Below, piece after piece: positions 3,063 through 52,789 of a stretch of DNA of 64,000 nucleotides. Within the stretch, counting starts at the first letter, position 1. Each line of letters opens with the position of its first letter. The notes beneath the pieces were generated by a model. It did not search any database, was not told the origin of the DNA, and was given only the letters and a program-made list of their open reading frames with translations. The stretch comes from Podarcis filfolensis (Eukaryota), in NCBI GenBank assembly GCA_964270895.1, contig OZ185435.1. The stretch is one strand, 5' to 3'. Position numbers and translations under genes: made by a program.

Positions 3063-3327
3063 TGGTGATTTAGTGAATCTATGTGTATACGGTATCACTC
3101 TCTGGGATCAGTCTGGGCTGAAACAGCCCACTGTCAGGAGAAACTTCTGTATAACATGGTGGAGTCATTGAGAACCAGATCTGCTTTAGTCTTCAAAACC
3201 CCATCCTAGATTCAGTTTCTTAGTGACAGTTGCATGTGACCCATATATGTTTCAACCATGTACAGATGTTTGATATTTCTGTCTGACATAAATATGTTGT
3301 GAAAATACTATTCATTATTCTTTGCAG

Positions 3328-3459
3328 GCAAGATGGTTCTGGGAAGCTTACTTTCAATCAATGAAAGCTATTGCTTTGGCAACCCTCAAGATTATCAATG
3401 ACAGGATCTACCCATATGCTGCCACATCATATGAAGAATGGAATGATCCCCCAGCAATT
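3328..3459 (+). CDS. EXT2: Exostosin-2 internal coding exon (human exon 8 equivalent, 132 bp, phase 0/0)
   Basis: tttgcag|GCA...ATT|gtaagt; translates [44 protein letters not shown], recognisable EXT2 sequence. Confidence 0.97.
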
Positions 3460-4547
3460 GTAAGTAGAGCTATATTTCTATTAAATTTAATATGCTGGGC
3501 CTCTTCAAAAACAGACTCCCATTGTGATCTGCTGATATTTTATATTTTGCTGGTAAACACAAATTTCACTTAACTTTTTCCAAAACATAGCCTAAAGGGA
3601 AATATTTGTGTATTAGCTTGCTACACTATTTCTCTTTTTCTCTTAAAATGGGAGTCTTAAGCTATTGTCGTATGTTAGAAGTCTAGTTTTGACCATTGCA
3701 AACAGTTCTTAAAATAAGTGCACTGCATTTCTGCTTTAAGAAATTTGAACTACTTGTTAGCAGAGGCACTTCCAAGAAAGTGGCTGGGAAAGCTTTTTGA
3801 CTGAGAATAGTAAATGTTGGACTCAGGATGGCAAATGAGTGATTGCTGTTTGTTCAGTAGGCATGCTCTGTCTGACAATAGAAACTGATTATTATTGCTG
3901 AATTTTGGTGATTGTACTGCTATTCCATGATTACATTGCAAAAGGTAGGACATCTTACAAGCTTCTACTCCAGAGGGACTCTCCAGAGTAGATTTTGGGG
4001 GTGCTGCAGCAGGGAGGAAATGAAAGCAGAAGTCTTGTTGTGCAAGTTGAAGTCCTCTTTCACTCCATTGGATACAACCCAGTGTGCAGCAAAACAATAC
4101 CTGTGACTCCCCTCATCCTTTTAACTGAGAATTTTAATTTATTGGTTTACTACCCCTATGACACTTGCAGAGTCAAGGGAGTGTTCATATTTGTCAGTTT
4201 ATTGCATATTTAGGGAGTTGAGCACCATTGTACAAAATGTATGGCTCTGTTTTGTCATTGCTGTTCCAGTGTTCTCAAAAGGGGTGTCATAAATTGTAGT
4301 TTAACCACCACTATTTTAATAATTGCCAGGAGACCTGCTGTATGCAGAGCAATAAATGTACTTTCTCAGCAGACCTCCATTTTCTCTGTGACTGACTGCT
4401 AGAGAGCAACTTGGCTGTGAGACAGGAAAAGAGATGCCCTACTAAATGAAATAACAGATAAATAGTTCAAAGAATGGCTCATGTGTAAGTTAGAGTGAGA
4501 GAGCAGCTAGTGCAGAGAATGGTATGAAGGTTCTACTGCTGAAACTA

Positions 4548-4791
4548 GTTACAGATAGGTAGCCGTGTTGGTCTGCCATAGTCAAAACAAAAAAAAATTG
4601 TTTCTTTCCAGTAGCACCTTAAAGACCAACTAAGTTAGTTCTTGGTATGAGCTTTCGTGTGCATGCACGAAGAAGTGCATGTATCTGAAGAAGTGCATGT
4701 ATCTGAAGAAGTGTGCATGCACACGAAAGCTCATACCAAGAACTAACTTAGTTGGTCTTTAAGGTGCTACTCGAAAGAAAGAATTTTTTTT
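4548..4791. mobile_element. Penelope-like (PLE) non-autonomous palindromic insertion with 11-bp target-site duplication
   Basis: TSD tgctgaaacta at 4537-4547 and 4792-4802; perfect 59-bp inverted repeat 4610-4668 / 4713-4771; termini resemble reptile PLE pseudo-LTR ends (gttacagataggtagccgtg..., ...gaaagctcatacc...ggtgctact). Confidence 0.8.
4699..4736 (+). ncRNA. Minimal type I (dimer-type) hammerhead ribozyme motif of PLE origin
   Basis: GTAT (helix I) - CTGAAGA core - extra A - GTGTG CATG CACAC (helix II) - GAA - AGCT (palindromic helix III) - C (predicted cleavage after 4732) - ATAC (pairs GTAT). Activity untested. Confidence 0.7.
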
Positions 4792-7529
4792 TGCTGAAAC
4801 TAAGCAGCTCTTCTACTATAAGCCATCTTGGGGAAAGATTGCTTGGGACCAATATGTCAGTTGCTCTGAGCAACTCAGGGAGAGCCGATTACACAAAGAT
4901 ACTGCTATCTAAATGCTTGTTATAAAAAAATTCACTTATCCAAACACAAGGAATTAGTACCGAAACCATGCTATACACGCTACAGATTCAGATACCCGAA
5001 CAGCTGAACCTGTCATATATTCTCCTACCTCATGTCAAATGTAGCGTCCCTAATATGTTGTCTGTTCTAGTCTAAGCAGTTTGCCTTAGTCGTGTAAAGT
5101 TAAGTTATAGAAGGTTTTGAAAAACTCTCCTGCTTTTCTCAAAGGACTGATCTTGAGAGGGTTTTAAAAAACAAAACAAAACACCCATGAGTTTTATTAG
5201 TGTCCAGTGGGTTTAGATGTCATGATGATGGATATCAATACTGTATTATTATATCGAGCCATCGTGTTAGCAGTGGTCTGAGAAAAGCATTTTATATAAA
5301 AACTAAAGCTATGCCTGTTGCCATGAGTACTTTAACTTACCAAACATACTGTTTGGAAAAGATTTTACAGTGCATCAGCTGAATATCTTTCAGAAATGTT
5401 TCCAGGTGAAATTTTATGGCATCTATCCTACAAAATGTAGGACAAGGTAACGACAAAGGCCTCTTAAGACCATACACTTTATAGCTATATGCAGCTTGAT
5501 TGAAGGTTTTGGCACAGAGGTAGCCCAAAAATGTTCACTTAAAGAAAACTGTATAGAACCATTTTAGTTTCAGATCACTTGACACTTCAACATATCAGTT
5601 AAAATATTGGAAATGTTCAAGTGTTTCTGTAGCTGGACACTTACCTGCTTATTTGAGGAGAATATATTTCCTTTCACATGAGTAACTTGTCAGACCTGAG
5701 AGACACCTCAATGAACAGCTATTAAAATAGCACAGGGTTTTTCTTTTGGACTGGCCAACAGATCTTTGTAGATCCTAGTCTGTTTGGACTAAGTAACAGG
5801 CGTAGTCGTTGTGTGAATGATGACTTACCTTTGGAGAAACTTGCCCCTAAAATTAATGGAGTAAATACAGAAACTGTTAAAAATGCACAGACACCATGGT
5901 GCTTAGATGTCAAGGCCATGCCAACATTTAGGTAGAAGCTAATTTTGTCGTTGCTAACAGCTGCTAAGTTTCTGTTAGTGGTAAATGAAAAAATGTAGAT
6001 TTGCTACCTATTACAGGTTGGTTTAACAAAACATGGAAACTCTCAGTCATGAAGAGATCTCAAACCAAATTAAAGGGGCATGAAATCCATACTCTACGGG
6101 TGACTTCTTTTTTAAGGCTCCCATTTCTTGTATGCGTAGACTCAGCAATAGCAATGCACAAAATACCATTGCACCTTAGTTCAATTTTTATTTTGTCATG
6201 GATAAGGATAGTAGAAAACTTGTTTTGTTTTTGTTTTTTACTGAACTTGGTCTTTCTGACCATTTATAGCCTGAAATGTAAATAAACTATAGTTTTTGCT
6301 TGGTTTATACACCTACTGCTGCCTCCACCCAAACTTCCACTGATCAGGTGTTGACAGGGAAGAGGAGTGGAGTGGAGGAGGATGCGACTGAACCCACCCC
6401 CCTTTCGCCTTTTAAACTAGCTGATCATCAGGATTTTCGTTTTAAAGAGAAGTTGCAAGTGCCTGCTTGGCTGCTGGGTTATTACAAAATGCTGGCTGAA
6501 AAGGGGGAAACAAATAAGCAATTGCTTGGCAAGTTTGAGTGCTAGTTTTAACCTAGGTAAACTAGAGTGCTTTGCTTATTGAAGAAGTGACTGATGATAT
6601 TCATTATGAAACTCAAATTCTGCATTAAGAGAAATTATGTTCAAGACATATTATGCAAATCAACACAGCATTAAGGGTTGGATCAAGACTTCCCCAGAAC
6701 AGAACTTTGCTAACTAGACACAACCTCAGGTTGAATAAAGGAGGCATTTTTCATTGGTTCTTCTTGCACCTCACTATGTCCCCTCAAAATCTGCTCTGGA
6801 AGGTTTGAGGACCCTACAGAATCATGTAAGAGGTTGGAGAGGTTGCAAAGGGAAGGAGAAATAGGTGTCAGGTTTTGCCACTCTCCTTTCCTCCAGTGGG
6901 AGCTGCCTCCTGGATTTACAGAAATTCTTTCTGTAAATAGAAGGAGCTCTTCAGGGAGAGCCGATTACACAAGTTGTGGATGGGAAGCATGGGGGGAAAT
7001 GTTGTCTCTATGCATTCAGTGGAAGTACATCCTGCTTACAGAACAAAATAAAATAAAGGTATTCCTTGTCAGGTAATTCAAAATAGAAACTGCATTGAGG
7101 TTACAATAGATTCTTAAAACACAGCCCCCCCCCAAACCACCACCCCCAAACCACCCTTCCTTGGAAAAATGATATAAGTATAATTTTAGTATTTAAAAAG
7201 TGTTGGAAAGAACATTTTAATCAATGTATCATTAAATCCTCCTTACTTCTTTCATAATAGTATTCTATTATGGTTCAAACAGAATATGATTTCACAAAGT
7301 AATAAAATATGGCTGCTGAGAAGAAAATTGTGGGAGGGAAGGAAAATAGCACTGCTTTTGTTCATGAGAACAGTAAAAAACTTTTATTATCACCATGTTG
7401 GCGATCTAGCAACGGGGGAGTAATATTCACCCTCATAGTGTGCACACCAGCATGTGGGCGAGACTGAAGGAGTGAGTAACCAGGAACAGGATCTTCAAAT
7501 TGTGTTGGCTAGCTCAACAAAAATGTCCT

Positions 7530-8010
7530 ATCACCTCAAAAAGGATCCAGAAAAAGTTCAGAAAAGTGGCAACCAAAATGATCAAGGGGTTAGGGCAAGG
7601 CACTATGAGGAAATACTACAACACTTGGGACTTTTTTAGTTTAGAGGAAAAGGCAACTAAGTGTGGACATGATCAAGGTGTATAAAATTGTGCATTGCAT
7701 GAAGAAAATGAGTGCTAGAACTCAAGGGCATTCAGTGAAGTTGGTCATCAGAAGATTCAGGAGAGACAAAAGAAGGTTCTTCTTCACACAGGTAAACTAT
7801 GGAATTTGCTCCCACAAGAGGCGATGATGGTCGCCAACCTGAACAGCTTTAAAAGAGGATCGGACAAATTCATGGAGGATCAGGCTATCAATAATGGCTG
7901 TTAGCTGTGTTGGAAGCAGCACACCCCTGAATACCAGTTCCAGGGAATCACATGTGGGGAATCACAGTTGTTGTGCTCAGATCCTGCTTGCAGGTTGCGC
8001 AGGCTGAGTA
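7530..8010 (+). mobile_element. CR1 LINE 3' fragment (degenerate RT C-terminus and 3'UTR)
   Basis: gaaaaagttcagaaaagtggcaaccaaaatgatcaagggg (LEKVQxRATKMIKG-like), ggacaaattcatggaggat. Confidence 0.85.
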
Positions 8011-9865
8011 GGCAGGTGGTCTTCATCTTCCTTCTGCACTCCAGTCTGTGCCAGCAAAGTGGCTCAGGAGCATTATTCTATCTTCTCTTTCTGTCTTGGG
8101 GATTTATTCCACTTGATTATTTATGCAACATATTTATATGTTGCCTTTGAAAATAAATTTAACATTACAATAGTGTTCTTTGACTTGGGTATTGTATTGT
8201 TGGCACATAACTTCTGTTGTATTTTTAATTGTTGTAATTGTGTTGGAGATAGAGTACAGATGTTTTCAGAAACAAACACTATAAATGATTGTACACTAAT
8301 CATTGGGAAATCAGTCATTCATAAGATTAGCCCCCCCCCCCCGCCTTATGAAGTTTTTCTCTTTCCATGTGGGGTGAGGTTCAGAGTCCTTCATATCTCA
8401 GGAGACGTGAATTCCATCATAATCTTTTTTGTGGGGCGGATAACTTTCTTCATTCTTTATTGAGTCTTAAAATAGTTTTAATACTGCATGCAGTTGAAGA
8501 AGAAGAAAGTTCACTTAGCCAAAGCAAAGGAAATAAATTCTCCAGTAGCAAATGGAAACTTTAAAATGTTTTTTTTTCTTCTTCTTCTAAATGGCAGTCT
8601 GACACAAATGAGTCGCTTCTTGTGGAGATGTTCCTTAAAAAAAAAATTCACCAAAAGTTAGGCCAGTTTCCCAGCCTCCCACTCAGGTTCTGGATCCCAG
8701 TGCTTTGGCTTCTTTTGCTGTCTGCGGAAAGGAGACCGCTGTCAAACAGCCAGGAATGCCAGACCGAGCAATGTGAGAGCCCTGTTGCATTGCAGAGTTG
8801 ACACTTGCAACTGGATATGGCTTGTACATAAAACTGATTCACGATAAATACCCTATCAGTCTTGGGTTAATTACTGTGGCTCCTGTAATGAATATTAGCT
8901 GGTTGAGCGTTGGGAAGGCTGGCGGCTGGGGGTGGGGAGTGAGTTAGAATTGTCTGAGCCATGGCTAAGTGTCAGCACTTTGTCAAAGAAAGTGATGGAT
9001 GATTACACCATCAGTACCAGTTGTGGGGAGTGTGTGAGAGAGAGTGAGAGAGATCAGTTGGTGATCTCCAATACAAGGCCTGGATGCACCTGAAACGAAT
9101 GTTGACTGATGCGTTTTCTATTGTTGGGAAGAACCATCCTTATGTCACCATCAATTTCATGCCCTGCTTCCATAATAGGGATTTAATTAGGCTTCTGTTG
9201 AGTTAATTACCTGCATTGTTTGCCTTTCTCCAACAGAAGTTTGTAAGACTCAAGTAAATCATGGAGGTTTGAATTTGCCCAATTTCCTGCCGAAAGTGAG
9301 GTCAAGAGGTCCCAGACTGTAGACACACTTTTCAGGCAGGCAGCAGGGGGTTGGCTCTTAATGGTGCTTCAGCAATGCCTAAATGCCCTTTTGAAATGTT
9401 ACTCTCAACTAAGGAAACTTGATTATTTTTGAGGTGGGGGCGTTCACTGTTGGATGTCAGAGTAGCAGAACATATTCTAGCTCAGCCATTCTTTACCAGT
9501 GTCTCAATTACACAGTGGGCTCCTTTCAACAAAGTGGCACAGCTGCCTAGATGCTACATTTCTTTATCTAGACTTAGAAATGTGTTGGATGTTAAATGTA
9601 CTATAAGAATTTCCATCATAGTACTAGTATCAAAAAGTAAAAAGTTGCTTTTTTGATATTGTTCATTTTGAAGGCAAACCTACTGGGATGAGTAGTAACT
9701 GGGGTCAGGCAATTTGCCTCATTTGCCATAGCCATGAATCAAAGCTGTAGTGCTGGAGCTCCAGCTATTGATTAGAGATTACTTAAAGGAAGCTTTTGAT
9801 TGCTTTGTTTCATTTGTCATTTGTCCGCCCTGCCCATCATTAGTTTCTGTGCTGCATTTGTAGTA

Positions 9866-10105
9866 CAGTGGTACCTCGGTTTAAGAACAGCCCTGTTTAT
9901 GAATGATTCAGTTTACGAACTCCGCACAACCAGAAGTAGTGTCCTGGTTTGCAAACTTTACCTCGGTCCAAGAACGGAATCCGAACGGTGGAAGGGCACC
10001 AGCGGCGGGGGCCTCATTAGGGAAAGTGTGCTTCGGTTTAAGAACGGTTTCGGTTTAAGAACGGACTTCCGGAACGGATTAAGTTCGTAAACCATAGTAC
10101 CACTG
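9866..10105. mobile_element. 240-bp Tc1/mariner(pogo)-type MITE
   Basis: TA|CAGTGGTACCTCGG...CCATAGTACCACTG|TA terminal inverted repeats with TA target duplication; no ORF. Confidence 0.9.
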
Positions 10106-10784
10106 TATATACATGTAATGATTAGCAGATGAACGGTAAAAGACAAGAGCCAAAGAACAACTTACATATGAGTAGGCATCCCGTCTTGTTTTAAGTGGTA
10201 AATAAGCTCCCCAACTTGCCATTGCAGGCACAAAGCTTGAAAGAATGCCACTTTTAATGTTTTGTCCAGACATTGTAAAAAATATTGTAGGAAACACCAT
10301 ACCTTTCCAGAGACAGAGGGAAAGAGAGAGACTAGTTTTTCCCAAAAAATGTGTATTTTTCTAATCATTTCTTCCTGGTATACGACTGCACCATTTTATA
10401 CCCATTGTCATTCACACACCAGTAATCTCCTGACTGAACTACTCTAACATGCTGTACCCAGAGCTGTCCATTGACCTTGCTATGCCATTAAATGATTCAA
10501 AATTGTGCTGTATGACAGTTTTCTGAGACGGCACTTATTACTCTGGTTTTATTTAATCTACAGTGACTCCCTAGTCATGCTGCTGGTTACTACTATTTAA
10601 AAGTCCTAAATGCAGTGGAGGACGCTGTGATTGCTCCACATTTAAAAAACTATATAAAAAAACTTGGTGCCCAGGTAAAATTAGTGTATGGGAGGATCTA
10701 GCAAAACTCTATGGCAGACAAGATCTAAATCACTTTCCTATGAACATTAGTAGATGACTGCATCACAGTAAGCCTTCCGCTCCA

Positions 10785-10923
10785 GCACTGTTCAAACTAT
10801 TGCCGTGTTCTGTAGTGTTTTGTACTACAGCTCCCATCATCTCCCATCATGGGCCATGCTTACTGGGGCTGAAGGGAGTTGAAATCCAAAACTTCTGGAG
10901 GGCCAGTAGGTTGGGCAAGGATG
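10785..10923. mobile_element. Palindromic hAT-type MITE
   Basis: gtactacagctcccatc...gggagttgaaatccaaaacttctggaggg...ggttgggcaagg. Confidence 0.6.
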
Positions 10924-11910
10924 GTCTCTTCAGGACACACACCCCTTCCAGCTGCCCCTGATGGTTGGGAGATTCCCTAGAGCACTATTCAACAAAGTGT
11001 GAGTGGTTCTTGTTGGAAGTGAAAATTGAGAATATCCGTATGTGCAACAAAATTATTTAGCTGCATATCAGACTCTGTTGATCCTAGCCAATTTGTTACA
11101 ATGTCCTATGCAAGGGTGAAGTTAATGCCCTAGTTTTTCATAGGCCTAGATTTTTTAAAAACATTCTGCTTTCCCCCTATCTATATTCTTTAATGTTAGT
11201 CTTTGATTGTGTCACTGGGAAAAGAAATGTATACTACAAAATGCATTCTGTTGGGACTCTACATTTTGGCTCTACTGTGCCTTATCTGCATCTCTGCCAG
11301 CTAAATTGGCTTCCTTATGATGGTAAAATAAGTCTTTTAAAAGTATTTAGGGAACATTAGGTGGAGTAAATAACTAAAGTTGATCTTTGTCTCTTTTCTT
11401 GTTTTTTAAAATGCTTGAAAGGTAGACTGTTTAAAACCATAGAACAAGCCTATTTTTGTTGAAGGTTGCTTTTTTATCCTTCTGTATTGAACCAAGAGTA
11501 TGTTTTCCTTTTTATTTGTGCCCATTTTATGTCAGGTTTATTAATTTGCCTCTTTTTACTTCATTTCCCCCCAGAAACTGTGGCACTAGGCTGGTTTTCT
11601 GTTTGTTGGCCTAGTCTGAATTCATATAAAGATTAAGCTTCCTTTTGGGAAGAGAGGTGTGGGGAAGAAGCAAGCCAGGGTAGCCGAATCTTTCTGGTTT
11701 TCCAGTAATCTGTCTTTTATTCTCCGGTATACCTGAACGTACTTGATAGTTTTTATTATGACTTGAACAAATGCATAGAACATATTTATATTTAACAGAG
11801 ATTGGTGTTCTATCACAAAAAGAGTCTTTCAAAGACCAGTTTTCCCTCTAAAATGCTTACTTTGTTGGTGTGCTGATCTGGACCTAATGATGGAAATTGC
11901 ATTCAGTTGA

Positions 11911-12225
<315 letters not shown>

Positions 12226-14307: not shown

Positions 14308-17300
14308 AAAATAGAAATGTGTGTTTCTTTCTTAAGGTCTGTTTTGAACATATATTTCCATTCCAATAAACTAAACAATAAAACATACATGGAACAATAT
14401 ATATTCCAACGCTTCTTGACATATTGCCCTTTGGCATAATATGCGTGTGCCGCATAACTTTGTCTGTGTGCAGAAAATGGAGGGTGCAGTTTAAGAGGTT
14501 GAGAGAGGGTGGGTATTGACCTCTAGTAGTAGTAGATGCCACCAAGCAGTGAAGTGATGAATTACTGGAGTTGTCCCAGCTACCTTTAGAATGGGCAGTT
14601 ACAAGGTCACGTCTAAAGAGAGCCTCCCTGAATTCTAAGTATTGCAACAAGTACTGACTGGCTGTGAAAAAGCCCCTCTTCAGTAAAGTGCACAAGTGGC
14701 TGCTTGTCACCTCCAAGCCCTTTTGGAAGATTATTTAAATCCATTTTCACCTGAATCCCTGATTGTAAACTGCTTTTACAGCACTTGAGTGCTGAGAGTA
14801 CAGGTTATAATGGCCTACAACGAATAAACCCTGTGGCCTGTTGTGCTTGCTTATGGATCTCTAGTCAAAGACAGTCAAAGCTAACGTGATCGCACCAGCC
14901 ATAAATTGCTGAGTAACCATGGATTGGATATGCTGCCAAGCTAGGAGGAAAATGGAGTAACTTGCTGCCCACTCTTCCCTTGAGCATATGCCTTGAACCT
15001 GCTACACTCCAGTTTTCTTGGGGCAGGCAGCAGTGGTATCAACAAGGCGAAGAAGTCACTGACTGCCCACTACTGTTCACCAGAACTTCTCAGAATTGTT
15101 GGTCAGCTTGGGATAAAGAAAAGGACATGGCATGTTGCATCCTTCTCCACAGCCCAGACCAAGCTCCAACAATTGCCTTAGGAGTGGAGATTTATTTAGG
15201 GGACCATGATCCTCCAGTGCTCTCTCCTTTTTGTTTGTTTCTTTCTAGCAACTGGACAAAAGAATAGTGAAGGAGTATGGGATCCGGATCCCTCCCTTTG
15301 TGTTTCTTGAGGAAGAGAAGTTGTGTGAGGGAAGTTAGAAGTAGGTGGTGGTTCATGTCTTCATACATACACAAAGGTGTATGTATATATACCAGAATTG
15401 TGTGTGTTGCCCTGTCCAAGTTCACACACTGATTTCTGGGTGTGTGTTTCCACTTTCTTTTTATATAAATAAAAACATGCACTTTCTTTCTAGTACTTTG
15501 AGCTGTTGTGCTTTTAGTGTGTCAAAGAGATAGAATACTAGAAATGATTTGGGGTAGAAGGGGGTTGATTATGTGAACACTGATTGGTCAGTTGATTACT
15601 GGTCAGCTTTATCTGATGCATGTAGTTCATAGATACTGAAATATTTTGCATTTGGGTGAAATATTTTTGTTCCTTTGAATAAAAGAAGCCTATCTGAAGC
15701 TTTGTTATAAAATGTATGTGTCCTGCCTCTTGAGAGCAGAACAATCATTGGGTTTCTTAAGCTCACATGGCTTCTTACCATCTCTCCCCTGTGTGTGTGC
15801 ATGTTCGTTTATTTAATCCTGAGATTTGGATGAAGCCAAATTATTTGATAGCAAAATTGTCATGGCCAAGTAGTATTTCACTATTTTTAAGCTTAAAACT
15901 CTGTTCATTGTAGCAGATCATTATATAACCCTTTTTCATTGATATACTGTTGAAAATATATTAAGTTGTTGACATGAAAAATAATTGGCCCTGAAGGTCA
16001 TAGGTTTGTTTCCTTACTGAGACTTAGTTATTTAGCTTTACTTTCTAATAGGTATGTATTTTAATAACTTTCTTATGTGACCGCCAGCTACCCCCTTCAT
16101 CTATGTATTTTTAACACTTGGATAGGTTGTGGAATGTCCTGGTCTGCTGTCGAGGGGTTTAATTTAATTTGTTTTAATTCAAATGCATACAGTTCGTTCC
16201 ACCTAGCTCTTTGGTTGGATAGCAGAACTTGGTTTCACTAAGTCTTTCATTCAGTCTGTCTATTACGGCTCCTAATCCTTGGACTTCAAAGCTTCTGCCA
16301 TTTATAGCCTATTAAAGCCAGGAAGTTTCTGATGGATTAGGACAAGGAATGAGTTTGAAGTTAGTAATGCACACCGCTGTCAACGATAAGGTCTAGTTTA
16401 TTACCCTACGGTAGTATCTGCACATTTATGGCTATTCTCTTTTAATTGGTTATAGTAAAGCTGGGACCATTAACCTGGTTGAGTATCAAATGCAGGATAT
16501 CCTGGCCAGTGCTGTATAGGGAACACATTTCTGGCTTTGAGCAAAGTCAGGTACGTTTTCTGTTATTTGAACCAGTTGTATTTTTGATATACATTAATGG
16601 GAACTAGAAAGAGAACATCAAAGGTAATTTTTGCTCATGATGGCCCTACAGTAAATTCAGATTTGAAATTGGCTCTTAATATTGGCTACTGCATCGGTGG
16701 ATATAAAACCAGTTAGCTTATCCACCTCTCCCCACAATTCCCCATTGATGGCCCCATAGTAACTGTATAAATTCATCTCTCTTATGTATTACCAATTTTC
16801 AATTTGTAACTTGGTTGTATAATAAAAAAATATTGTAAGCCTTTGCTACAGGAAAAGCAAAAATTAAAGGGAAAGAAAATGAACTCATGCCAGTGTTCAC
16901 TGTAAGAGTGTAAAGCTACAGGCAAGTTTGAAGCCCCCACCCTAGTATCTTATTGACTACCTGACATTTCTGGTGTGCTTCTTCTGTTTTATTTTAAAAT
17001 GAAACAATACTAACAAACATGTTACAAGATTGTAAGTCGTGTAAATTGAAGTCAGGCATAATGTTGTGTGACATAGCTTGAAACTATTAATTGCACAAAA
17101 TTCTAGAGCTTGTGCTCTGCCACCTTGGTCCTTAGAAGCCCAGGGAACTATAATTGTAGTAAAATCCAGAAATTAACAAACACAGGTTGTTTCCATTAAC
17201 AAAGGTAGCAACACTAGACTCCCCAGCTCAAGAATTGGTTTCTGAATAAAGAATCAGCAGGACCTTTTTGAGCTGTATTGTGTGCAGCTGCAACCTAAGG

Positions 17301-17334
17301 TCTACTGCATTCTTACAATTGAAAGAGATCTTTC

Positions 17335-18600
17335 CAATCTGGGTTCAGGCCTGGCTAAGGAACTGAGTCAGCCTTGGTCGCCCTGATGAATGACCTTTGC
17401 AGAGTGCAGGGCAGGGGGAGTGTGACACTGCACCTGCTTCTTGATCTCTTCTTGGCATTTGATCCTTTCAACCATGGTTTCGTCTTTGACCGGCTCTAGG
17501 GAATGGGAATTGGGGGCCCTGTATTACAGTGGCTCCAATCCCTACCTTCAGGACCGAGTCCAGAGCGTAGCATTGGGAGAGTGCCTTTCTGGCCCCTGGC
17601 AGCTACATTCTGGGGTATCGCAGGGGACTATCTTATCTCTGATGCTATTTAATATCTACATGAAGCCGTTGGGAAGTGGTCATTGGGAGATTCAGGGCAA
17701 GGTGCTATCAGTATGCTGATGATACTCAGCTCTGTTTCTCCATAACATCTGAATCATCCATGGTGAAATGGATGAGGATTAGAAAAGCTGAGCTTGAATC
17801 ATGGCAAGACAGAGGCACTGTGGATGAGTAGCTCCATTGTCTGAGAAACTGTTCAGTTGCCTGCCCTGGATAGGGTTGCACTCCCCTCTGAAGGAGCAGG
17901 TTCACAGTCTGGGTTGCTTCTGGATCTATCCGCCACTGGATGCTCAGGTAGCCTCAGTAGCTATAAGTGCCTTTTACTAACTCTGGGTGGTTCCACAGCT
18001 ACAGGCACTCCTCAACCAGGAAAGCCTCGCTACCATAGTTCATGCACTAGTTACTTCAAGAATAGATTATTGCAATGCACTCTTATGTGGAACTTCCTTC
18101 ACAATTAATCTGGAAGCTGCAGTTAGTGCAGAATGCCGCAGCACAATTGCTGACAGGAGTGAGGCCTTGTCAGCATATACACTTGTGCTCAGAGATCTGC
18201 ACTGGTTGCCAATTTGCTACTGGGCCAAGTTCAAGGTGTTAACATTAGCATATAAAGCCCATAACAAGTTGGGACCAGTTTACCTATGAGGTCGCCTTGT
18301 GCCACACCTGCCCACTCGACCACTTCGATCAGCAGAATTGGCACTACTACAGGTGCCCCGTAACACCTGTTCTACATTTAAAAGAACTTGATCATTTAGT
18401 GTGGCAGTGTCCACACTTTGCAACAATTTTAATCTGTTTTAGTATTTTAACTTTTGTATGTTTTAAAGTAGGGTTGTACATTTTTCTTGATTTTACTGTT
18501 TTATCTTTCGAGGGGTGTTTTGTTTTTGTTTTGTTTGTTTTTAAAAACCCAGTCAAGTGTTGTATCAATTTTATGAAATAAATAAATAAAATAATAAATG
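17335..18600 (+). mobile_element. Degenerate L2 LINE (RT fragment, frameshifted) with A-rich tail
   Basis: ORF pieces SGVSQGTILSLMLFNIYMKPL and HALVTSRIDYCNALL...LHWLPI; boundaries approximate. Confidence 0.88.
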
Positions 18601-20745: not shown

Positions 20746-21230
20746 GAAGTATGGGTTCCCCACCCCTGTATTAAATAATGATGTATGTTCTTACTGCTAG
20801 TAGTATTCAAAGTTGTACCTGTATCTCAAGGTTATTTGAATTAATTGGAGTGTTGGAATACATTGGATGAAGTTCAGTGTTGTGCAGTTATAAATGTTGT
20901 ATCAGTACAAGCATATCAGCTTTCCAGACAAAATTATTCCCTCTCCCCTCTCACCGCATGCTGTTCTGGGGTTCTCCCACAGCCATTTGTGAGAGGAGGA
21001 GAGGGGAAAACAGTCCCATTGTGCAAGCAGACACCGATGCGTAGGGCTTCCACTGACAGGGTTTGTCAAGTCAATCCCTCCCATAGTTTAATTGTCCTGC
21101 TGTACTCATGGCCTAGTACATGCATAGAGCACAAGGACTTGATTGGGGGTGTGTGTGAAGGTGTAATAAAACTGCAGATGAGATACAGCAAAAACACAAA
21201 TAAAATCTTAGATTTTGTTCTTCTTCACAG

Positions 21231-21397
21231 AAACTGTTTGGCCGAAAGTTCGAGTGCCACTAAAGGTTGTACGGACCACAGAAAACAAGTTGAGTAACCG
21301 TTTCTTCCCCTATAATGAGATTGAAACGGAAGCAGTGTTGGCCATTGATGATGACATAATCATGTTGACATCAGATGAGCTGCAGTTTGGTTATGAG
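21231..21397 (+). CDS. EXT2: Exostosin-2 coding exon (exon 10 equivalent, 167 bp) with the GT64 DDD motif
   Basis: ttcacag|AA ACT...GAG|gtaaga; (E)[55 protein letters not shown]. Confidence 0.97.
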
Positions 21398-21899
21398 GTA
21401 AGACGGCTTCTGCTTTTTGCATGACTTGAGTTGATTGAGTTAAATGCTTCTGGGGACAAATCCTCAGCTAAAATGTTCTTAACCTTCAAGTAGTGCCATG
21501 ATGCATAATCAGCATAAAGTTCTTGCAGCTATCCAGGAAATGTTGTTAATCTTCAGAAAATATTATCTTTGCATTTTGCTGCCCTTGCTCCCCCAGCATG
21601 GAGGGAGGATTAGTTATAGTTCTTTTCCAACTCATATGCAAGGTTAGCACATAAAGATGTGTGCCAGAGAGCCTGAAAGATGAAACTCTTGGACAGAAGC
21701 AGAGAGGAAACTATATTTGTATTTCTCTCATGACGCTTTTTGGGGATTTCCAAAACCTGTCTTTCTGTGTTGCCCGTTTAGTCTTCTACTATAAGCAAAA
21801 GTTTGTCTATAGCACATTGGATGATTATTATGGCATAGGCCTCCCCAAAATTCTCTCAGGACAGCTTAACATAAAATAGAAACAAATTAAATATACAAT

Positions 21900-50265: not shown

Positions 50266-50641
50266 TTAAGAGTTCTCCCCCACCCTAGCTTCCCAACTAA
50301 AAACTGAAATCACATTGGGCAAAATGCTAGTCATGAGAGATCCTATCCTCTACCCAAGAGATGGCAAACTTAGCTGTTTATACAATAAACATACTTGCAC
50401 AGGCAGCACACACACTCACAATATATTCTCCTAGGTATGCACACTTAGGAACACAAAAACATGGTTAAGCATGGATAATATTACTTATGCATTCACACAC
50501 ACATTAAGTGATAGTCAGCATTCGTCATCATCAGAATGGCTCCATTGATTTCAGTGGATATATTCTGGACATGACCAATGTTGGATGTTGCCCATTATTT
50601 CTTGCATGAGAGTTCCAGGTACAACTCTCAAAGGTACCCTT

Positions 50642-50734
50642 CTGAAGAAGTATGCATGCACACGAAAGCTCATACCAATAACAAACTTAGTTGGTCTCTA
50701 AGGTGCTACTGGAAGGAATTTTTTATTTTGTTTC
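50642..50734 (+). mobile_element. Short Penelope-like fragment (same family as 4548-4791) with 10-bp TSD
   Basis: ctgaagaagtatgcatgcacacgaaagctcatacc...ggtgctactggaagg...; TSD aggtaccctt at 50632-50641 and 50735-50744. Confidence 0.8.
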
Positions 50735-52789
50735 AGGTACCCTTTCAGGTAGACTGACCACAGGCGGGCCAACGCCATTCAGAGGAGTGAACACTATCAA
50801 TGCCAGAAAAGTGTCTGTGGGACCTTGATTTCATAGCTTTAAAAGGTGGCGAGGGGCAAATGAGAGCACTTATCCCTGATAAGTTGTTTGTGCCACAACA
50901 AATACAACATTGTTATGTATTTGTTGTTGGGGGAACACAGGTGTCATTTCTGAAAGTTGTACTTTTACTGATGGGTGTTGTGTTTTCCGAGCCCTTGACA
51001 CACAAGGCATGATCCAAACACAGCGGAAACACTTTGTATGTCCTAGTGATGTCCTTAGCATTTTCACTAAAATCAACATGAAAACCCATTTTTTTTATCT
51101 CTGCAGGTAGAGTATCAATCCTTGTAAGGCTTATTGTAAAATATGGGTCTGGAATTATCACAGGCATGTATTGGATAGTGCACATGCCATCATCACTATA
51201 GACAAATAAGAGAAGTTACATACATACACCTGAAAAAAGAAAGTGGGGGGGGGGTGTTATTGGATCTTTTTAGTCTGTGCCACTGGCACATTTATTTCTC
51301 CAACAGTTAAATGTGTAGAACTAGTAAAATGGCTAGAGGGATAGATGATCATGTGGAATGATCACATGGTGGTGAGGGAACATATGGCTTCCCCATCTCT
51401 AAATGGAGGCCCTGCTTCATTTACCTCTGCTCCACAAATAGGATAGTTCCAATTTTTCCCCCATTCAGATTTTCCAGCAACTTTTCCTCCTGAGAACCCA
51501 TGTGCACTGAAGACCAAGAAGCCTTGTTGTCGATGACCTGACTTTTTGTAAGAATTCCTGCCGGCATCCTTCCCATTCCAGGCCAGAGTGTGTGCAAATG
51601 CTTATGATTCCACAGCCACATGTGAGCCAGAAGGCAGGTGTGCGCTTGTGTCCCAGGCATCACCGAGGGGGGTCTTGCTTTTGTGACAAGGCCCAAATGA
51701 AATCTCTGTGCCTGTATAGCAGCTGCTCACTGGCAGAAGGGAGACCAGTAGCTACCAGACCCAGTAAACACCCTCTTAAAAACCAGACAGGTGGTTTAAA
51801 CCTCCTTCTTTCTTTCTCTTCTCTGATGCATATGTAGCTCTGTGCTTAAGAAACCACAAAACCTAAACACTGTTTAAAAATCAGCTTATTCATAGCTGAG
51901 TTGGGTGGAATCTCAGCTGACTCGATCCAAATCTTCTTTGATCAATCTATAAGGAAAGCAACCACAGGGGAACTGGGAAGTTGCCACCATCCTGATGAAT
52001 GGGAGTGACAAGAGGTGGGTCCATGTCTGCTAAAAGTTTTGAGCTGAAAGCAAGAGCATTTCCAACCAAAGAAACAAGCTCTAGCTTTATTCCTCCAGCA
52101 CATGGCTAGGGCAATCTTCATGTGGTGGTTTAAGTCAGCACAAATGGAAGGGGACAGCAGGAAGACTGTTTTTTGAGCTAGGCTGCGGATTGCGGAATTG
52201 TGAATACTGTTTAAAGAAGGCACTTGTTCTGGTTATCATGGAGATCTATCTTCTCTTATTGGTCAGAAGCCTGTGACCGTAATAATATAGGAAGGGAAAA
52301 CCATGTTCTTTGGCCTTCTGTAGAACTAGCCATGTCACCTGGGCAGGAAGACAGGAGAAGGATTTTCTCTTTCTTGTAGACCACACTCTTGTCGCACTCT
52401 TGCTCTTTATTCAGAACCTTGTTTTGGACTGCATTTATTGATGGTAGCAGCTCCCACAGCTTAATTTCATTCCTCAGCACTAAAGCAGGGCAAAAGATGG
52501 AAGAGGGTGGGCTACTTTATGTTGATTTTCTTCCTTTATTTTCCTACATTTCTATGCTGCCCATGCAACAAAGTTCTCTGGATGGCACACAAACAGTCAC
52601 TTATTTGAAGGACTGTCAGGACGTGGTCCTATCTCTGGTCCAAGGCTGTTTTAGAGACCAGGAGTCCTAAGGAGAGAGTGAGCAGGGGCATCCAAGTTGC
52701 CCATCCGCAGGCAGCACCTGGGTGGCAGACCCAGCAGACACGCCGGCCACTTGGTCAGTCTTCCCCACTATGGTTAGATGCACTGCATT

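Follow-up and report, generated by a model that had tools for sequence, protein, structure and literature searches.

A hammerhead motif in an EXT2 intron

A complete hammerhead core on the sense strand of a gene's intron raises the question of whether it is a ribozyme that acts on the host pre-mRNA or a module that a retroelement carried there. We asked this of a motif in an EXT2 intron of P. filfolensis, which an earlier note had interpreted as a potentially live self-cleaving RNA able to affect EXT2 processing. The catalytic core, the architecture known from Penelope-like elements (PLEs) and the need for a second molecule were all borne out by our analysis, while the live ribozyme with an effect on EXT2 processing was not. 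We consider it very probable that the motif represents the ribozyme module carried by a PLE-type retroelement family that is very abundant in the lizard lineage, that it is not a feature of the host gene, and that it is masked in the EXT2 pre-mRNA.

The motif occupies positions 4699-4736 on the + strand of the window, by which we mean the whole 64-kb stretch of DNA that was analyzed, and it reads GTAT-CTGAAGA-A-GTGTG(CATG)CACAC-GAA-AGCT-C-ATAC. Sequence reading and a descriptor search agree on a minimal type-I hammerhead with all core nucleotides, as it had originally been written down. The two catalytic boxes, CUGANGA (here CTGAAGA, 4703-4709) and GAA (4725-4727), follow each other in type-I order, and the H at position 17 is C4732, which places the predicted cut between 4732 and 4733. 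Helix I is formed by GTAT (4699-4702) and ATAC (4733-4736). An extra A at 4710 is left unpaired between positions 9 and 10.1, and G4711 pairs with C4724 as the G10.1-C11.1 pair that opens helix II (GTGTG-CATG-CACAC, 4711-4724). Helix II consists of 5 bp and a 4-nt loop, and as a whole it is a perfect 14-nt palindrome. The helix III segment, AGCU at 4728-4731, is likewise its own reverse complement (AGCT in the DNA) and has no loop, so that this helix is possible only between two copies.

We searched both strands of the window with a descriptor made up of a 4-bp helix I, CUGANGA, zero or one extra base, a helix II of 4 to 7 bp closed by G10.1-C11.1, GAA, a 2- to 6-nt palindrome of the form A...U, and H17. 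The only match was 4699-4736, and the same descriptor had no match in any of 300 dinucleotide-preserving shuffles. Thus, the motif is real and not a chance match. The earlier note had looked to an Infernal-type hammerhead model as a check, and here the outcome differed from that of our own descriptor: Rfam at its gathering threshold reported no hammerhead in the whole window, and at E<=10 none of the models RF00163, RF00008, RF02275, RF02276, and RF02277 matched the 801 nt or the 66 nt around the motif. This silence is expected, since the models expect a helix III hairpin, and membership in the minimal hammerhead ribozyme (min-HHR) class is therefore based on the published descriptor instead of a curated model.

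The marks published for PLE min-HHRs comprise, besides the catalytic boxes, a base inserted between 9 and 10.1, pairing of G10.1 with C11.1, a palindrome at 15.2-16.2, and helices of unequal length, I being short and II long (PMC4209133). Every one of these sequence marks of the metazoan PLE ribozymes is found at 4699-4736, including the palindrome that makes a partner necessary for helix III. The assignment to PLEs rests on this architecture and on the literature.

The strand and the intronic position are given by flanking ORFs that match human exostosin-2. ORF 3292-3570 matches positions 346-392 of PDB 7sch_B (E 7e-24) and ORF 11911-12225 matches positions 392-459 of the same chain (E 1.5e-35); the two exons were searched separately by reference, and their bounds were read from splice signals. 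The coding exon 5' of the motif-bearing intron lies at 3328-3459 (+), between AG 3326-3327 and GT 3460-3461, and the following one, in which the GT64 domain starts (Pfam PF09258), lies at 11974-12163 (+). Between them is an 8.5-kb intron, 3460-11973, with the hammerhead 1,240 nt into it on the EXT2 sense strand, in agreement with the gene and strand originally given. A further EXT2 exon belonging to the GT64 domain was seen at 21212-21421 (+; Pfam E 8.7e-16), so the window covers at least three consecutive EXT2 coding exons, all on the + strand. The next EXT2 intron holds overlapping ORF fragments at 17246-18286 (+) with a 'YADDTQL'-like motif, which by eye resemble a decayed LINE reverse transcriptase; Pfam returned nothing for these fragments at E<=0.01.

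Architecture, age, and abundance of the 244-bp insertion

The hammerhead is part of a 244-bp insertion, 4548-4791, that begins 1,088 nt from the donor site of the EXT2 intron and consists of two inverted, 5'-truncated copies of a PLE-type repeat. It is flanked by an 11-bp target-site duplication, TGCTGAAACTA, whose left copy (4537-4547) and right copy (4792-4802) are evident both as a direct repeat and from the empty-site joint in two related species. The left arm, 4548-4668 (-), is a reverse-oriented copy recognized from the inverted repeat and the arm alignment; it breaks off within helix II and lacks the CUGANGA box; the minus strand is therefore without a hammerhead, and the sole intact motif is on the + strand. 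The right arm, 4699-4791 (+), is a sense copy that runs from hammerhead helix I to a T-run, and it was delimited by the sequence, the repeats, the arm alignment, and the consensus of RNA reads upstream of 4698. The two arms meet at a central junction, 4669-4704 (+), made of two exact 18-nt tandem units, GAAGAAGTGCATGTATCT (4669-4686 and 4687-4704, 100% identity), which copy the first ~20 nt of the element with a 2-nt loss and adjoin the 14-nt palindrome of helix II. As an inverted repeat, the arms pair over 90 nt (4579-4668 with 4713-4802, 93% complementary), and from 4713 on the hammerhead motif is itself part of one arm. When aligned from helix II to the T-run, the reverse complement of the left arm differs from the right arm at 2 sites only.

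The alignments also place the 3' ends of the copies at two discrete positions ~40 nt apart. The right arm ends at the T-run and the second copy in the window, described below, at or near it; the left arm extends 41 nt further, and this 'tail' (4548-4588, -) is confined to the left arm. In many reads and contigs of other copies, likeness to the window ends at 4545-4548, which is the long-form 3' end of the element. At the other end, most family RNA reads continue upstream of 4698 with a common sequence ending ...CTTCTGTTTCAG, which is absent from the right-arm copy; the right arm is therefore 5'-truncated exactly at helix I. Downstream of the hammerhead there are stops in all three frames within about 50 nt.

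Two side observations concern the edges of the element. The family sequence that ends just upstream of helix I resembles a 3' splice site, and 4698/4699 is the exact point at which many contigs of the related species cease to resemble the window. In Penelope of Drosophila virilis, the 5' end of helix I is where the intron stops (PMC4209133), and by analogy the lizard family may share this layout of intron and helix I. In addition, the right copy of the target-site duplication (4792-4802) is equal at 7 of 11 positions to the element sequence just past the T-run (4578-4588), which may reflect microhomology at one of the priming sites or may be due to chance.

A window search and alignment identified one other copy of the family, at 50642-50734 (+), 46 kb from the motif and flanked by a 10-bp duplication of its own, AGGTACCCTT (50632-50641 and 50735-50744). 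This copy is 5'-truncated at core C3, with the 5' strand of helix I missing, carries a G>A change that produces an A.C mismatch in helix II, and has its 3' end a few bases beyond the T-run. The window thus holds no intact partner copy for the hammerhead, and a query of the window with the upstream consensus from the RNA reads found no longer copy.

We compared positions 4100-5299 with DNA contigs of two related lizards, species E and B, and with two bulk RNA runs of species E; reads were compared with intron sequence only, and the conserved exon was left out. In both species the contigs contain the empty site at single-copy depth (13.2 in E and 10.9 in B), with a joint from 4536 to 4792 that skips 255 nt and in which 11 letters fit both sides, equivalent to one copy of the 11-bp duplication. 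Of the 31-mers sampled, a fraction of about one half to 0.6 is shared between the window and the related species, which corresponds to roughly 2% divergence. Since the site is empty in E and B, the insertion postdates the split of P. filfolensis from both relatives, and since it is missing in two related species, the site has no conserved function. Thus, the insertion is young and not conserved. Elsewhere in the same intron, 17 extra letters at 4217 in both related species mark a small indel relative to P. filfolensis.

The repeat itself is abundant in the same contigs. Summed contig word depth over the repeat was 3e5 to 9e5 in species E and B compared to 10 to 13 in the flanks; these sums are not copy numbers as such, and they indicate a family of ~10^4-10^5 copy-equivalents in the related genomes. 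Thousands of contigs from these genomes carry the sequence of the motif. When family patterns were searched for in two scans of metagenome data and one of viral data, no copies were found. Another interspersed repeat lies nearby, at 4900-4979, where contig word depth in the two related species was 490 to 890 compared to 10 to 13 in the flanks.

RNA of the family is present in species E. Of the 12.6 to 12.8 million records read per RNA run, about 1,000 match the repeat, with both orientations represented, and 98% of them run into unlike sequence, which shows that they stem from other family copies. The unique intron flanks drew 0 reads in these runs from a species without the insertion, and the data concern the family and not the EXT2 locus. 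No site at which many molecules begin or end was flagged, including 4732/4733, where the cut-site bin held ~440 to 510 reads combined. Because an end was flagged only at a fifth of local depth, the missing pile-up counts against efficient cleavage only. The earlier note had expected cleavage to leave RNA ends at 4732/4733; with several hundred family reads per run in species E, none had accumulated there.

Folding of the locus and alternative readings

All energies in this section are nearest-neighbor estimates without Mg2+ or tertiary contacts. Calculated in this way, the RNA of 4540-4820 forms one long hairpin with an MFE of -157.8 kcal/mol (z -19.6 compared to shuffles). In a 361-nt context, each nucleotide of 4713-4736 pairs with the left arm at a probability of at least 0.997, and this segment covers most of helix II, the GAA box, helix III, C17, and the 3' strand of helix I. 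Enforcing helices I and II changed the energy from -184.8 to -150.1 kcal/mol, a cost of 34.7 kcal/mol. In the isolated 38-mer, the hammerhead-like fold was estimated at -6.0 kcal/mol, compared to an MFE of -6.8, with pair probabilities of 0.64 to 0.73 in helix I. We also calculated that a double-hammerhead dimer, held together by intermolecular AGCU/AGCU pairing and helix I, reaches -11.1 kcal/mol, compared to -13.6 for two free monomers. The perfect 14-nt palindrome of helix II also allows a rival dimer; pairing through this palindrome was estimated at -30.6 kcal/mol, and helix III is excluded from it. Based on these models, the hammerhead at the EXT2 locus is predicted to be inert, being masked by the hairpin and having no competent partner nearby, although co-transcriptional folding could allow helix II to form briefly. 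The computed energies agree with the low in vitro activity published for metazoan PLE hammerheads.

Since the hairpin is so stable, it could be asked whether the ~90-bp inverted repeat acts as double-stranded RNA that is edited by ADAR or diced into small RNAs, with some influence on EXT2 or on how the repeat family is silenced. Besides the folding energy and its z score, this reading draws on sub-threshold matches of 4579-4802 to miRNA-precursor models in Rfam; however, the best of these reaches 48.9 bits, where the gathering score is 100, and the families are from plants, which is a generic hairpin effect and no evidence of a miRNA. The insertion is also young and not conserved, and PLE insertion commonly yields such palindromes as a by-product (PMC8557442). 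We therefore regard a role as double-stranded RNA as improbable.

Still less probable, in our view, is that a live self-cleaving RNA on the sense strand cuts the EXT2 pre-mRNA after 4732 in trans and affects its processing, as the earlier note had suggested. The core is complete and lies on the sense strand, family RNAs in cells of a related species are in principle possible partners, and cleavage as dimers in vitro is reported for PLE minimal hammerheads (PMC4209133; Lunse et al. 2017, as cited in PMC6765202). However, 4713-4736 is locked in the hairpin, from which hammerhead formation costs about 35 kcal/mol, and the contacts that a dimer offers, a 4-bp helix III and a 4-bp helix I, bring no net computed stability. 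Within the window, the one further copy is defective and lies at a distance of 46 kb, and an insertion that is absent in two related species leaves no host function that has been retained. The activity of metazoan PLE hammerheads in vitro is low, even as dimers (PMC4209133; reviewed in PMC6765202), and read ends at the cut site are missing both from Anolis RNA-seq (PMC11167929) and at the family level in species E.

The two remaining readings can be dismissed briefly. That the locus is a conserved host hammerhead of the amniote HH9 (RF02275) or HH10 (RF02277) kind has a negligible probability, for although those ribozymes are also intronic and on the sense strand, they have been conserved between species, possess loop-loop contacts as well as a stable helix III, and are recognized by Rfam, whereas the EXT2 motif is species-specific with an empty site in the relatives, is without a stable helix III, and gave no RF02275 or RF02277 match at E<=10. 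A chance match to a short, degenerate motif, which the length of 4699-4736 and the lack of a report from any Rfam hammerhead model could be taken to favor, is just as remote in view of the 0 of 300 shuffles, the near-identical second copy in the window, and the thousands of related-genome contigs with the sequence.

This leaves the ribozyme module of a PLE-type family as the reading we favor, and with it the consequence for EXT2 would be small, as the insertion is recent, lies deep in an 8.5-kb intron, and contains a ribozyme that is structurally masked.

Insertion pathway and comparison with known elements

We propose that the PLE-type insertion arose in one retrotransposition event, which would have placed 244 bp into the EXT2 intron and duplicated 11 bp of the target. 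The two strands would have been nicked 11 bp apart, and each nick would have primed its own cDNA on element RNA, one from the distal start site, giving the left arm with its 41-nt tail, and the other from the T-run, or proximal, site. The arms lie head to head, and the 3' end of each, where reverse transcription starts, points outward. The two short cDNAs would then have been joined near the helix II palindrome, and slippage at this step would have left the 18-nt repeats. In the source element, the hammerhead presumably serves to process the element RNA once the palindromic helix III has brought two copies together; in the EXT2 pre-mRNA, the ~90-bp hairpin of both arms would bury it from the 3' half of helix II through the cut site.

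With considerable confidence, we judge a single event of this kind, with two nicks, two start sites, and cDNAs joined near the helix II palindrome, to be the most likely pathway. We put forward much more tentatively, as a possibility that we rather doubt, that the insertion is the trace left in vivo by a PLE enzyme carrying out target-primed reverse transcription on both strands, with the cDNAs joined at or next to that palindrome. The part of a PLE enzyme and the pair of nicks are what we infer; the boundaries of the insertion and its empty site are read directly from the DNA. If this held across the many 'Penelope palindromes' of the genome, the helix II palindrome would also be a joining hinge at the DNA level, apart from RNA cleavage. 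The locus is of use as a clean, dated PLE-type palindromic insertion that illustrates how the family inserts, with exact boundaries, an empty site in two sister species, a tail at one end, and inverted arms.

Such hammerheads and palindromic PLE insertions are an already known kind of feature. PLE min-HHRs occur in thousands per genome, mostly as solitary motifs within truncated copies, with some opposite-strand pairs 100 to 700 bp apart, and similar motifs are found in turtles and snakes (PMC4209133); non-bird reptiles are rich in Penelope elements (PMC4350176). The helix II of Schistosoma min-HHRs has 7 to 8 bp, compared to the 5 bp and 4-nt loop at 4711-4724. A tRNA-derived SINE head was also considered for this locus and rejected, as ARAGORN reported none in 4400-4900 and Rfam reported no tRNA.

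The closest comparison in a lizard is Poseidon_Ac (PAc) of Anolis carolinensis, whose ribozyme has a like architecture, with CUGAGGA, an extra U, a long helix II, GAA, a palindromic ACGU, and C (PMC11167929). PAc insertions have two adjacent reverse-transcription start sites that result in an optional tail of 30 to 40 bp, the tail being the stretch between the two sites, and the EXT2 insertion is alike in this; the PAc enzyme nicks and extends both DNA strands in vitro (PMC11167929). In the EXT2-intron element, the 3' end follows the cut site after about 60 or 100 nt, compared to about 85 to 92 nt plus the tail in PAc. However, the PAc ribozyme and its flanks are unrelated in sequence to the EXT2-intron element, which rules out identity with Poseidon_Ac despite the equal architecture. 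The PAc ORF starts in helix II, whereas the EXT2-intron element has a stop in each of the three frames within about 50 nt. The unrelated sequence and the frame stops make this a family distinct from Poseidon_Ac, which, judging from its sequence, may be a non-autonomous derivative instead of a truncated autonomous PLE.

Animal non-LTR retrozymes (PMC7229834; Li et al. 2026 preprint) are likewise non-coding, with a type-I hammerhead, a weak helix III, and kinship to the pLTRs of PLEs. Retrozymes, however, are arranged in head-to-tail tandem arrays from which circular RNAs arise. The EXT2 locus is solitary: it contains only the inverted pair and the 18-nt internal duplication, with a single intact motif, and a non-LTR retrozyme was therefore ruled out.

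The form of the insertion has its counterpart in complex PLE insertions, which show strong 5' truncation and often a second, likewise 5'-truncated copy in opposite orientation directly against the 5' end, which creates inverted repeats (Craig et al. 2021, PMC8557442), and in which a 30- to 40-bp tail is present at one end only (PMC8557442, PMC11167929). The EXT2 insertion has all three of these properties, the 5' truncation, the inverted abutting copy, and the tail at one end, and it differs in that its arms are very short (93 and 121 nt), with no ORF-bearing body between them. The locus also counsels caution with complete hammerhead cores in reptile introns, which are usually retroelement cargo.
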